Part shown: positions 45,394 through 48,300 of the stretch, one piece after another
Layout of the letters: each line of letters starts with the position of its first letter
Numbering within the stretch: position 1 is the stretch's first letter
From: Tubulanus polymorphus
Lineage: Eukaryota; Animalia; Nemertea
Direction of reading: 5' to 3'
Length of the DNA: 64,000 bases
Assembly: GCF_964204645.1 (NCBI RefSeq)
Contig: NW_027437457.1
Location: 1 to 64,000 of the forward strand
Made by a program: the position numbers and the translations under genes
Notes under the pieces: generated by a model
Database searches by the model: none
Told to the model about the DNA's origin: nothing
Seen by the model: only the letters and a program-made list of their open reading frames with translations

Positions 45394-48300
45394 ATGGAAC
45401 TTGACACGAATGATTGGTATTCAAAGGTGTTTATTTCTCTTTAAATCAATTATGACACTTGCATAGAATCGATATTCGTTAAATAGAAATGTTTTATAAA
45501 CTAATGTGTGATATTGTAGTCAGTAATCAAGTGTTTGGAGGCATCTAACATGACCTAAACCATCGCCTTATTTCTCTCGACTCACTTGCCAGTGTTGGTT
45601 TCTGTTGTAGGATGCAAGTGATAATCCAGCTGTGATTAATATGGATGGATTTGATAATAATGAAGGTTAGTAAATGGTTCCCTCTGCCACCATTTGGTGG
45701 CTAAATCCTGATTACTAATTATTTGATTAATTTAATCTTGACAAATGTTAAATTTCTTAATAATAAGGTGTTAATTCGGGTGCAACAACAATGATGCATC
45801 ACCAACGGCAACTGGGTACAGCTTCGGATGACGGCAATAATGAGGAAAATAAACTGAATTTATCGGAAGGTTTAAAACAGAATGTCACATCATTTGTAAG
45901 TTTTCTTCTGGATGAGGGCCTCCGAATGAGATCCTCCTAATGAGGGCCTCCAGATGAGGGCCTCCGAATGAGGGCCTCCGGATGAGGGCCTCCTAATGAG
46001 GGCCTCCTAATGAGGGCCTCCAGATGAGGGCCTCCGAATGAGGGCCTCCGGATGAGGGCCACGGAGCTCGTGAGGTTTTACTAGTTTCACAAATAGACCG
46101 TCCGATGTGGAGGTCTAATGAATGATGCATATTGGTTGTTTGTAGATGTGGCAGGCAGGAAAAGCTCAAGCTCAACAACTCACGTCCTACGCTAAAATCG
46201 ATATTCTACGACCTTATTTCAACGTTGAACCGCATCAAGTTGGACAAAGACTGTTGTATTCTTTGGTGCCAAAGTTTCCTGGCACAGCTCCACAGGTAGG
46301 AATCAGAAAGAGGGAGAGAGAGGAGGATGAGAGAAAGGATGAGTGAAATGATGAGTGAGAGGGTTGTATTTAATGCTCTTACTGTATTTCAGAAATTACC
46401 CAGTGAATTATATGGTCCAACGATGTTAGTTTTTACACTGGTGGCGCTACTGTTGTTTCAAATGAAAATGTCCGGTCATCATGTTGTAAGTAAAACGGCC
46501 ATTTTGGATTGATGTTTTACTATCTTGCAAAAAGGGTTTAGATATAGGGTTATGTCAAAAATTGGTTATGTTGATATTTTGCGGGGTGAAGGCGCTCTAA
46601 TGGGTTCAGCTATAGGATTATGTTGATATTTTGCAGGGTGAAGGCGCTCTAATGGGTTCAGCTATAGGATTATGTTGATATTTTGCAGGGTGAAGGCACT
46701 CTAATGGGTTCAGCTATAGGATTATGTTGATATTTTGCAGGGTGAAGGCACTCTAATGTGTTCAGCTATAGGATTATGTTGATATTTTGCAGGGTGAAGG
46801 CACTCTAATGGGTTCAGCTATAGGATTATGTTGATATTTTGCAGGGTGAAGGCGCTCTAATGTGTTCAGCTATAGGATTATGTTGATATTTTGCAGGGTG
46901 AAGGCACTCTAATGGGTTCAGCTATAGGATTATGTTGATATTTTGCAGGGTGAAGGCACTCTAATGGGTTCAGCTATAGGATTATGTTGATATTTTGCAG
47001 GGTGAAGGCGCTCTAATGGGTTCAGCTATAGGATTATGTTGATATTTTGCAGGGTGAAGGCGCTCTAATGTGTTCAGCTATAGGATTATGTTGATATTTT
47101 GCAGGGTGAAGGCGCTCTAATGGGTTCAGCTATAGGATTATGTTGATATTTTGCAGGGTGAAGGCGCTCTAATGGGTTCAGCTATAGGATTATGTTGATA
47201 TTTTGCAGGGTGAAGGCGCTCTAATGTGTTCAGCTATAGGATTATGTTGATATTTGGCAGGGTGAAGGCGCTCTAATGTGTTCAGCTATAGGATTATGTT
47301 GATATTTTGCAGGGTGAAGGCGCTCTAATGTGTTCAGCTATAGGATTATGTTGATATTTTGCAGGGTGAAGGCGCTCTAATGGGTTCAGCTATAGGATTA
47401 TGTTGATATTTTGTAGGGTGAAGGCACTCGAATGTGTTCAGCTATAGGATTATGTTGATATTTTGCAGGGTGAAGGCACTCTGATGGGTTCAGCTATAGG
47501 ATTATGTTGATATTTTGCAGGGTGAAGGCGCTCTAATGGGTTCAGCTATAGGATTATGTTGATATTTTGCAGGGTGAAGGCGCTCTAATGGGTTCAGCTA
47601 TAGGATTATGTTGATATTTTGCAGGGTGAAGGCGCTCTAATGGGTTCAGCTATAGGATTATGTTGATATTTTGCAGGGTGAAGGCACTCTAATGGGTTCA
47701 GCTATAGGATTATGTTGATATTTTGCAGGGTGAAGGCGCTCTAATGGGTTCAGCTATAGGATTATGTTGATATTTTGCAGGGTGAAGGCGCTCTAATGGG
47801 TTCAGCTATAGGATTATGTTGATATTTTGCAGGGTGAAGGCGCTCTAATGGGTTCAGCTATAGGATTATGTTGATATTTTGCAGGGTGAAGGCACTCTAA
47901 TGGGTTCAGCTATAGGATTATGTTTCGCGTATTGGATCGGAGGTTCTGCCCTTATTTGGAGTGTGGCTTACGTATCAAACTCACACATCAGAGGAATGCA
48001 AGTTGCGTCATTACTGGTACGTTTATAACGGGCTTCCGTATTACTCTTTACGAGCTACCGTACTCACGTTGAGGGTATGCACTAATGAGCTGCTGTAATA
48101 TTTGTTTTTGTAGGGGTATGCACTAACAGGCCACTGTATTGTATTGTTTCTCGGGACAGTAATTCACACCTCTCACACTCACATGCTGTTCTATTTATTA
48201 TGGGCGATATTTGGAGGTCTATGCACGCTGAAAATGGTTCGTATTTATAACTGATCTCGTCTCCGATCAATTCTATCTCATTGTTGATTCGTCTAATTAA

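Follow-up and report, generated by a model that had tools for sequence, protein, structure and literature searches.

In human F7, a 37-bp VNTR in intron 7 (IVS7) begins with a unit that spans the exon–intron boundary, and the repeat carries 5–9 identical donor pseudo-sites (Borensztajn et al., 2006; PMC1557585). Site use was shown by 50 constructs: the exon-attached donor alone is used physiologically, and the other donors are functional when tested. The choice was not explained by any structure or intronic element (PMC1557585). As far as they are summarised in that paper, early experiments with duplicated sites gave contradictory answers as to which copy is used. On the acceptor side, the scanning model, to the extent that it is cited in a later source, describes a search that sets out at the branch point and ends at the first AG, and it includes an AG-exclusion zone (Smith et al., 1989, 1993, cited in PMC1636351) that usually covers about 7–19 nt past the branch point (PMC1636351). 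Most work on the choice among equal 3' splice sites has relied on artificial constructs that carry duplicated sites, with conflicting results. The distinction between exon definition and intron definition is reportedly treated by Berget in 1995 and by Fox-Walsh and colleagues in 2005. Where introns are long, recognition shifts to pairing across the exon, and the acceptor closest to the donor would then be at an advantage. Literature searches of limited scope turned up no natural array with many acceptor copies, which does not prove absence.

Here we describe such an array in the YIPF3 gene of the palaeonemertean ribbon worm Tubulanus polymorphus. The window, that is, the whole stretch of DNA analysed, comprises the first 64 kb of a contig that is 98 kb long and unplaced, and all coordinates below refer to it unless stated otherwise.

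The YIPF3 gene and its exon map

A previous sequence-only reading had named the gene YIPF3, and this identification is borne out. In an exhaustive search, the translation of exon 6 was 100% identical to XP_074661933.1 (345 aa, YIPF3-like isoform X2 of Tubulanus polymorphus), whose source record is the 98,126-bp unplaced contig. This protein matches YIPF3 of Lineus, Owenia, molluscs and vertebrates with E values of 1e-106 to 1e-72, the match to Lineus standing at 1e-106, and PF28233 is carried by hundreds of named YIPF3 proteins that match it. By full-length similarity, the Tubulanus gene is a clear YIPF3 orthologue. Similarity searches used the exons one by one and the full-length database protein rather than a spliced model of our own joining. 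Single YIPF3 exons gave no match as Pfam queries, being too short, and exon 6 alone gave none in a word search of protein collections; word searches with XP_074661933.1 and its residues 95–200 found no transcript-derived Tubulanus YIPF3 protein in these collections. Mapping XP_074661933.1 onto the window exon by exon, together with a copy-by-copy listing of the repeat, gives the following features.

46393..46485, + strand: YIPF3 exon 5 (KLPSE...MKMSGHHV), 3' end in phase 0; residues 123–153 of XP_074661933.1
46486..46491, + strand: intron 5 donor GTAAGT; sequence and exon map
46486..46565, + strand: unique part of intron 5, 80 nt; sequence and exon map
46486–47884, + strand: intron 5, 1399 nt; exon map
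46566..47924, + strand: 52-nt minisatellite, 26 copies; sequence, Tandem Repeats Finder and copy listing
46583..46584, + strand: copy 1, AG changed to GG, dead acceptor; copy listing
46635..47832, + strand: 24 intact decoy AGs (copies 2–25) in 52-nt steps, each followed by 13 codons and TGA; copy listing
47845..47849, + strand: candidate branch point CTAAT in the exon-derived part of copy 25; sequence, function predicted
47883..47884, + strand: real acceptor AG, copy 26; copy listing and four RefSeq isoforms
47885..48016, + strand: YIPF3 exon 6 (GEGTLMG...QVASLL); protein match and exon map
48017..48022, + strand: intron 6 donor GTACGT; sequence and exon map
48017–48113, + strand: intron 6, 97 nt; exon map

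The donors that the sequence-only reading had placed on either side of the array are thus present, the first directly after ...SGHHV. Exon 6 (132 nt) consists of a first 40 nt common to the decoys and a last 92 nt that are unique. Intron 5 without its 25 extra units would measure 99 nt, and the remaining YIPF3 introns, array-inflated ones apart, measure 87–101 nt.

All four RefSeq isoforms use the last acceptor, joining HHV to GEGT...CFAYW, and they differ from one another only in a NAGNAG choice and an alternative last exon. The TAGTAG acceptor of exon 10 (49239–49244) accounts for isoforms X1 versus X2, and the alternative last exon (49662–49681), encoding (V/L)LDKM*, accounts for X3 and X4. 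Because neither the NAGNAG choice nor the VLDKM last exon could be predicted by homology, we infer that the RefSeq YIPF3 models rest on transcript alignments. The protein sequence points to the same acceptor. Within the E-G-T-L-x-G motif, Thr and Gly are invariant in nine animals; the real copy keeps both, whereas the upstream copies have Ala in place of Thr in 17 of 25 and Cys in place of Gly in 7 of 25. Coding selection therefore holds the last copy only, as expected if it is the sole contributor to the protein.

The neighbourhood of the gene is repetitive as well. The YIPF3 start codon lies at 45394, and just upstream of it two near-identical blocks of about 200 nt each (44337–44535 and 45163–45362), some 830 nt apart, each consist of two copies of a 101–102-nt unit with TTAGGG-like motifs; the pair may represent a larger duplication of the YIPF3 promoter region. 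A 14-nt array of 10.6 copies (45912–46060) begins 16 nt past the intron 3 donor and inflates that intron from roughly 100 nt to 250 nt.

Structure of the acceptor array

Tandem Repeats Finder places the array at 46566–47924, with period 52, 26.1 copies, 97% matches, no indels and a score of 2571. The copy listing agrees, with 26 head-to-tail units free of indels, which is the copy number and extent that the sequence-only reading had given. Each unit joins the last 19 nt of intron 5 (TTATGTTGATATTTTGCAG) to 33 nt from the start of exon 6, and the 7-nt microhomology TTATGTT stands at both edges of the unit. The copies form a patchwork of common variants and are not identical to one another. The unit has no further occurrence in the 268-Mb, 77-contig assembly, and both flanks of the array are single-copy there, this being the one assembly compared.

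The AG is kept in 24 of the 25 upstream copies, including copy 14, whose tract carries a T-to-G change (TTTGGCAG), and copy 17, whose acceptor is TGTAG, a TAG. All 25 upstream copies read G-E-G-(A/T)-(L/R)-M-(G/C)-S-A-I-G-L-C, 13 codons, and then TGA, because the TTATGTTGA of the next unit comes after. Copy 26 is the sole copy that reads on into the exon, as CFAYWIGG. The earlier claims that 24 intact decoy acceptors each lead to a stop, that copy 1 has GG for AG and that only the last copy continues CFAYW therefore hold in full. The GG of copy 1 is real and probably not meaningful, because the AG is already intact in copy 2, and in a related array in RUVBL2 even the first copy keeps its CAG. 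That RUVBL2 copy is also the reason why a dead AG in the first copy was rejected as a general requirement of such arrays.

The 52 nt of the real copy are identical at all 52 positions to those of copies 3, 5, 7, 8 and 22. The copy-specific variants that had been proposed as markers for junction reads are therefore not unique. Upstream of the AG, decoys and the real site are identical over 52 nt or more, and downstream of it the identity extends for 40 nt.

The 3' splice-site module

For 1.3 kb upstream of the real acceptor there is only array, and therefore the branch point must lie within an array unit. The best candidate is CTAAT, whose branch A lies 36 nt upstream of the real AG; it is found in every unit, with the variants CGAAT in copy 17 and CTGAT in copy 18. 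Between CTAAT and CAG stand two AGs, 8 and 14 nt past the branch A, which would fall within the usual AG-exclusion zone. Each pair of units thus appears to hold a full 3' splice-site module, predicted from the sequence to comprise CTAAT, a U-rich tract and CAG. Because the branch point lies in the unit, every decoy is competent in principle, and the earlier argument that branch point and pyrimidine tract are unable to discriminate stands, given the 1.3 kb of array upstream and a branch point common to all copies.

Because decoys and real site are locally identical, the discriminating information must be either further downstream or positional. By elimination, three options are left: discriminating information beyond the 40 nt of exon that all copies have in common, in the 92 unique nt of exon 6 and the donor behind them, a positional choice of acceptor, or no discrimination, with about 1 in 25 splices productive. 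When four units were folded together with the exon start, the result was no better than for shuffled sequence (z +0.68), so there is no special structure and masking of the decoys by RNA folding is unsupported. The exon sizes predicted from copies 22 to 26 (340, 288, 236, 184 and 132 nt) are all ordinary, and the first intact decoy would give a 151-nt intron. Splicing to any decoy yields a stop codon that precedes the next exon junction by 142 nt or more.

Related arrays and genome context

The window holds 52 tandem arrays with a score of 100 or more, which make up 26% of its length and have units of 3–233 nt, mostly 12–137 nt. Ancestral introns were about 90–100 nt long, and with introns so short, a duplication of 20–100 nt that begins in one will often extend across a splice site. 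Within YIPF3 itself, a 35-nt array in intron 8 (48448..48625, + strand) copies the donor four more times. The real donor, GTCAGT at 48448, is followed by the echoes GTTAGT, GTAAGT, GTTAGT and GTTAGT at 48483, 48518, 48553 and 48588, and splicing from an echo would add an in-frame TGA to the message.

In RPS11, 3 kb downstream of YIPF3, a 54-nt unit (27 nt of intron end and 27 nt of exon start) is repeated 17 times (51210–52111) before the terminal exon, which has no downstream donor. One unit of 55 nt shifts the frame, and acceptors from 51270 to 51864 end in ...NDSLF*, while the AAG/GATG copies stop after 8 codons. The conserved C-terminus is reached only from the acceptors at 51919 and 52027 and from the real one at 52081; most decoys thus lead to a frameshift stop and two are in frame with the conserved C-terminus. 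In RUVBL2 (contig 11, minus strand), a 77-nt unit (22 nt of intron end and 55 nt of exon start) is present in 20.9, or about 21, copies (2794–4404 in the numbering of a separate stretch of that contig). Its real copy reads TPF...GSE and the decoys TLF...GSD, so conserved residues are lost in the decoys; the first copy has unique upstream sequence and an intact CAG.

RPS11 and RUVBL2 are essential, highly expressed genes. Were all copies used equally, only about 5% of splicing would be productive, which is implausible in genes of this kind, and the exon-attached acceptor is therefore probably strongly preferred, as judged from these gene structures. The YIPF3 array is one member of a recurrent class that arises from the genome's repeat dynamics, and not a gene-specific device.

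Further along the window, the tandem-repeat table lists a 104-nt array of 12 copies (55509–56756), which the sequence-only reading took for a whole intron plus a 28-nt micro-exon of a putative CWF19L1. The same contig carries Pur-alpha-like and RPS11 genes and, by the naming of that reading, CWF19L1.

Origin of the array and choice of the acceptor

The explanation that we consider the best as a whole, and somewhat better than even in its chances, is a young array without a function of its own, whose last copy is preferred by cross-exon recognition. A tandem duplication between TTATGTT microhomologies 52 nt apart would have run from an intron of roughly 99 nt into the next exon, and the TTATGTT at both sides of the unit is the signature of such a first duplication by slippage between microhomologies. 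The initial duplication would later have expanded to 26 copies. The resulting geometry leaves the last copy alone joined to the rest of the exon, with all others running into the intron-derived TGA, and functional mRNA would come from the last acceptor. This acceptor would be strongly preferred as the only one attached to the unique exon body and to a donor 132 nt downstream. The cross-exon recognition involved would be exon definition aided by exonic enhancers: with an intron of 1.4 kb, the exon body and donor would draw the 3' machinery to whichever module lies nearest upstream, and residual decoy transcripts would be cleared by nonsense-mediated decay. The annotated junction and the pattern of constraint are the observed basis of this mechanism; cross-exon recognition and decay are its conjectural parts. 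Under the same explanation, the array is probably no more than a by-product that a minisatellite-rich genome tolerates, and it probably has no functional consequence for YIPF3.

Several points count against it. Copy 26 is not separable from copies 23–25 by exon size, and RefSeq does not list decay-prone isoforms. Genomes with short introns also tend to pair splice sites across the intron, and such pairing would give the advantage to the first intact decoy with its 151-nt intron. In addition, the early experiments with duplicated sites disagree on the copy that is used, and the contig is a 98-kb unplaced piece.

The main rival, which we regard as unlikely, holds that splicing to decoys is substantial and makes the allele hypomorphic; decay would then remove the mis-spliced transcripts, and the loss would be either a cost that is tolerated or a sink that lowers dosage. 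In its favour, there are 24 intact modules, each with its own candidate branch site, the first of them restores a short intron of the kind normal for YIPF3, and with the AG lost in only 1 of 25 copies there is no sign of selection inactivating decoys. However, free decoy use would be very costly in RPS11 and RUVBL2, which have the same arrangement, decay could not hide the products of the two in-frame RPS11 decoys, and the RefSeq models have the correct junction only. If decoys are used after all, the arrays would be a measurable splicing load of a repeat-rich genome.

The sequence-only reading had proposed that the choice is dictated by the downstream donor. In its strict form, in which the donor at 48017 alone dictates the last AG by pure exon definition, we find this improbable. 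The identity of the sites on both sides of the AG does place the information further downstream or in position, and 132 nt from AG to donor is an ideal exon size; however, copies 23–25 would also give ordinary exons (288, 236 and 184 nt), and the RPS11 array stands before a terminal exon without a donor, yet the conserved C-terminus there needs the last acceptor. Because that array precedes a terminal exon, a rule by which the donor decides cannot be general, and the donor-only proposal is incomplete. For YIPF3 taken singly, it is plausible from the gene structure that the downstream donor decides the choice of acceptor.

It is highly improbable that misassembly created the array or its number of copies. 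The 98-kb contig is unplaced, but the 1.36-kb array is far below long-read size, a 77-contig assembly suggests long-read data, the copies are a patchwork of variants rather than identical, the flanks are single-copy, and similar arrays occur on large contigs. Stepwise removal of the intron by recursive splicing through the donor-like GGTGAAG after every AG has next to no chance of being right: AGG/GTGAAG does occur in each unit, two bases past the acceptor, but the GT is one base off the AG (CAG, then G, then GTGAAG, not the AG/GT of true ratchet points), each cycle would add one extra G and shift the frame, which only multiples of three cycles would restore, and a recursive splice site was rejected for want of an AG directly before the GT.

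Returning to preference for the last copy by cross-exon recognition, a broader version can be put forward tentatively, as a possibility that we would rate somewhat below even. In Tubulanus polymorphus, splicing may follow a near-absolute rule in favour of the acceptor that is joined to the exon body, which would be the 3' equivalent of the F7 donor rule, so that dozens of acceptor-echo minisatellites persist, even in RPS11 and RUVBL2. If this rule is true, the genome is a ready-made, many-locus natural experiment for 3' splice-site selection.

Comparison with known systems

In the Tubulanus arrays, 25 competing sites have the same branch site, the same tract and AG and the same 40 nt of exon. 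They thereby offer a natural experiment on 3' splice-site choice at several loci, a terminal exon included, the interest of which hinges on RNA data. Several described systems share parts of this arrangement. The scanning model accords with the YIPF3 unit in that, within the unit, the CAG 36 nt past CTAAT would be chosen over the AGs at 8 and 14 nt; however, the model does not predict the one that is used among 25 identical branch-site modules. Exon definition would need, at the RPS11 terminal exon, a poly(A) signal instead of a donor. NAGNAG acceptors likewise compete in series, and a true one is present in YIPF3 as the TAGTAG; however, their sites are 3 nt apart, have a common branch site and give two products that are both in frame, whereas the YIPF3 array has a spacing of 52 nt, a branch site of its own in each copy and a stop after each decoy. 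In regulated unproductive splicing, a poison site is coupled to nonsense-mediated decay, and the YIPF3 decoys would, by their reading frame, supply the premature stop.

The likeness to F7 is greatest. In both genes, the terminal unit of a minisatellite holds the authentic junction and identical sites stand in series: in YIPF3 the unit with the junction is copy 26, and the pseudo-sites are identical or nearly so to the authentic site, with five copies matching it at 52 of 52 positions and an AG in 24 of 25. The 35-nt array of YIPF3 intron 8 is the direct donor counterpart of the F7 IVS7 array. The intron 5 array differs in that an acceptor module is repeated 26 times, whereas in F7 a donor is repeated 5–9 times, and in that site use was shown in F7, whereas in YIPF3 we infer it. 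The closest known case is thus the F7 IVS7 donor minisatellite. The YIPF3 array corresponds to it on the acceptor side, has many more copies and is matched by similar arrays at several loci.
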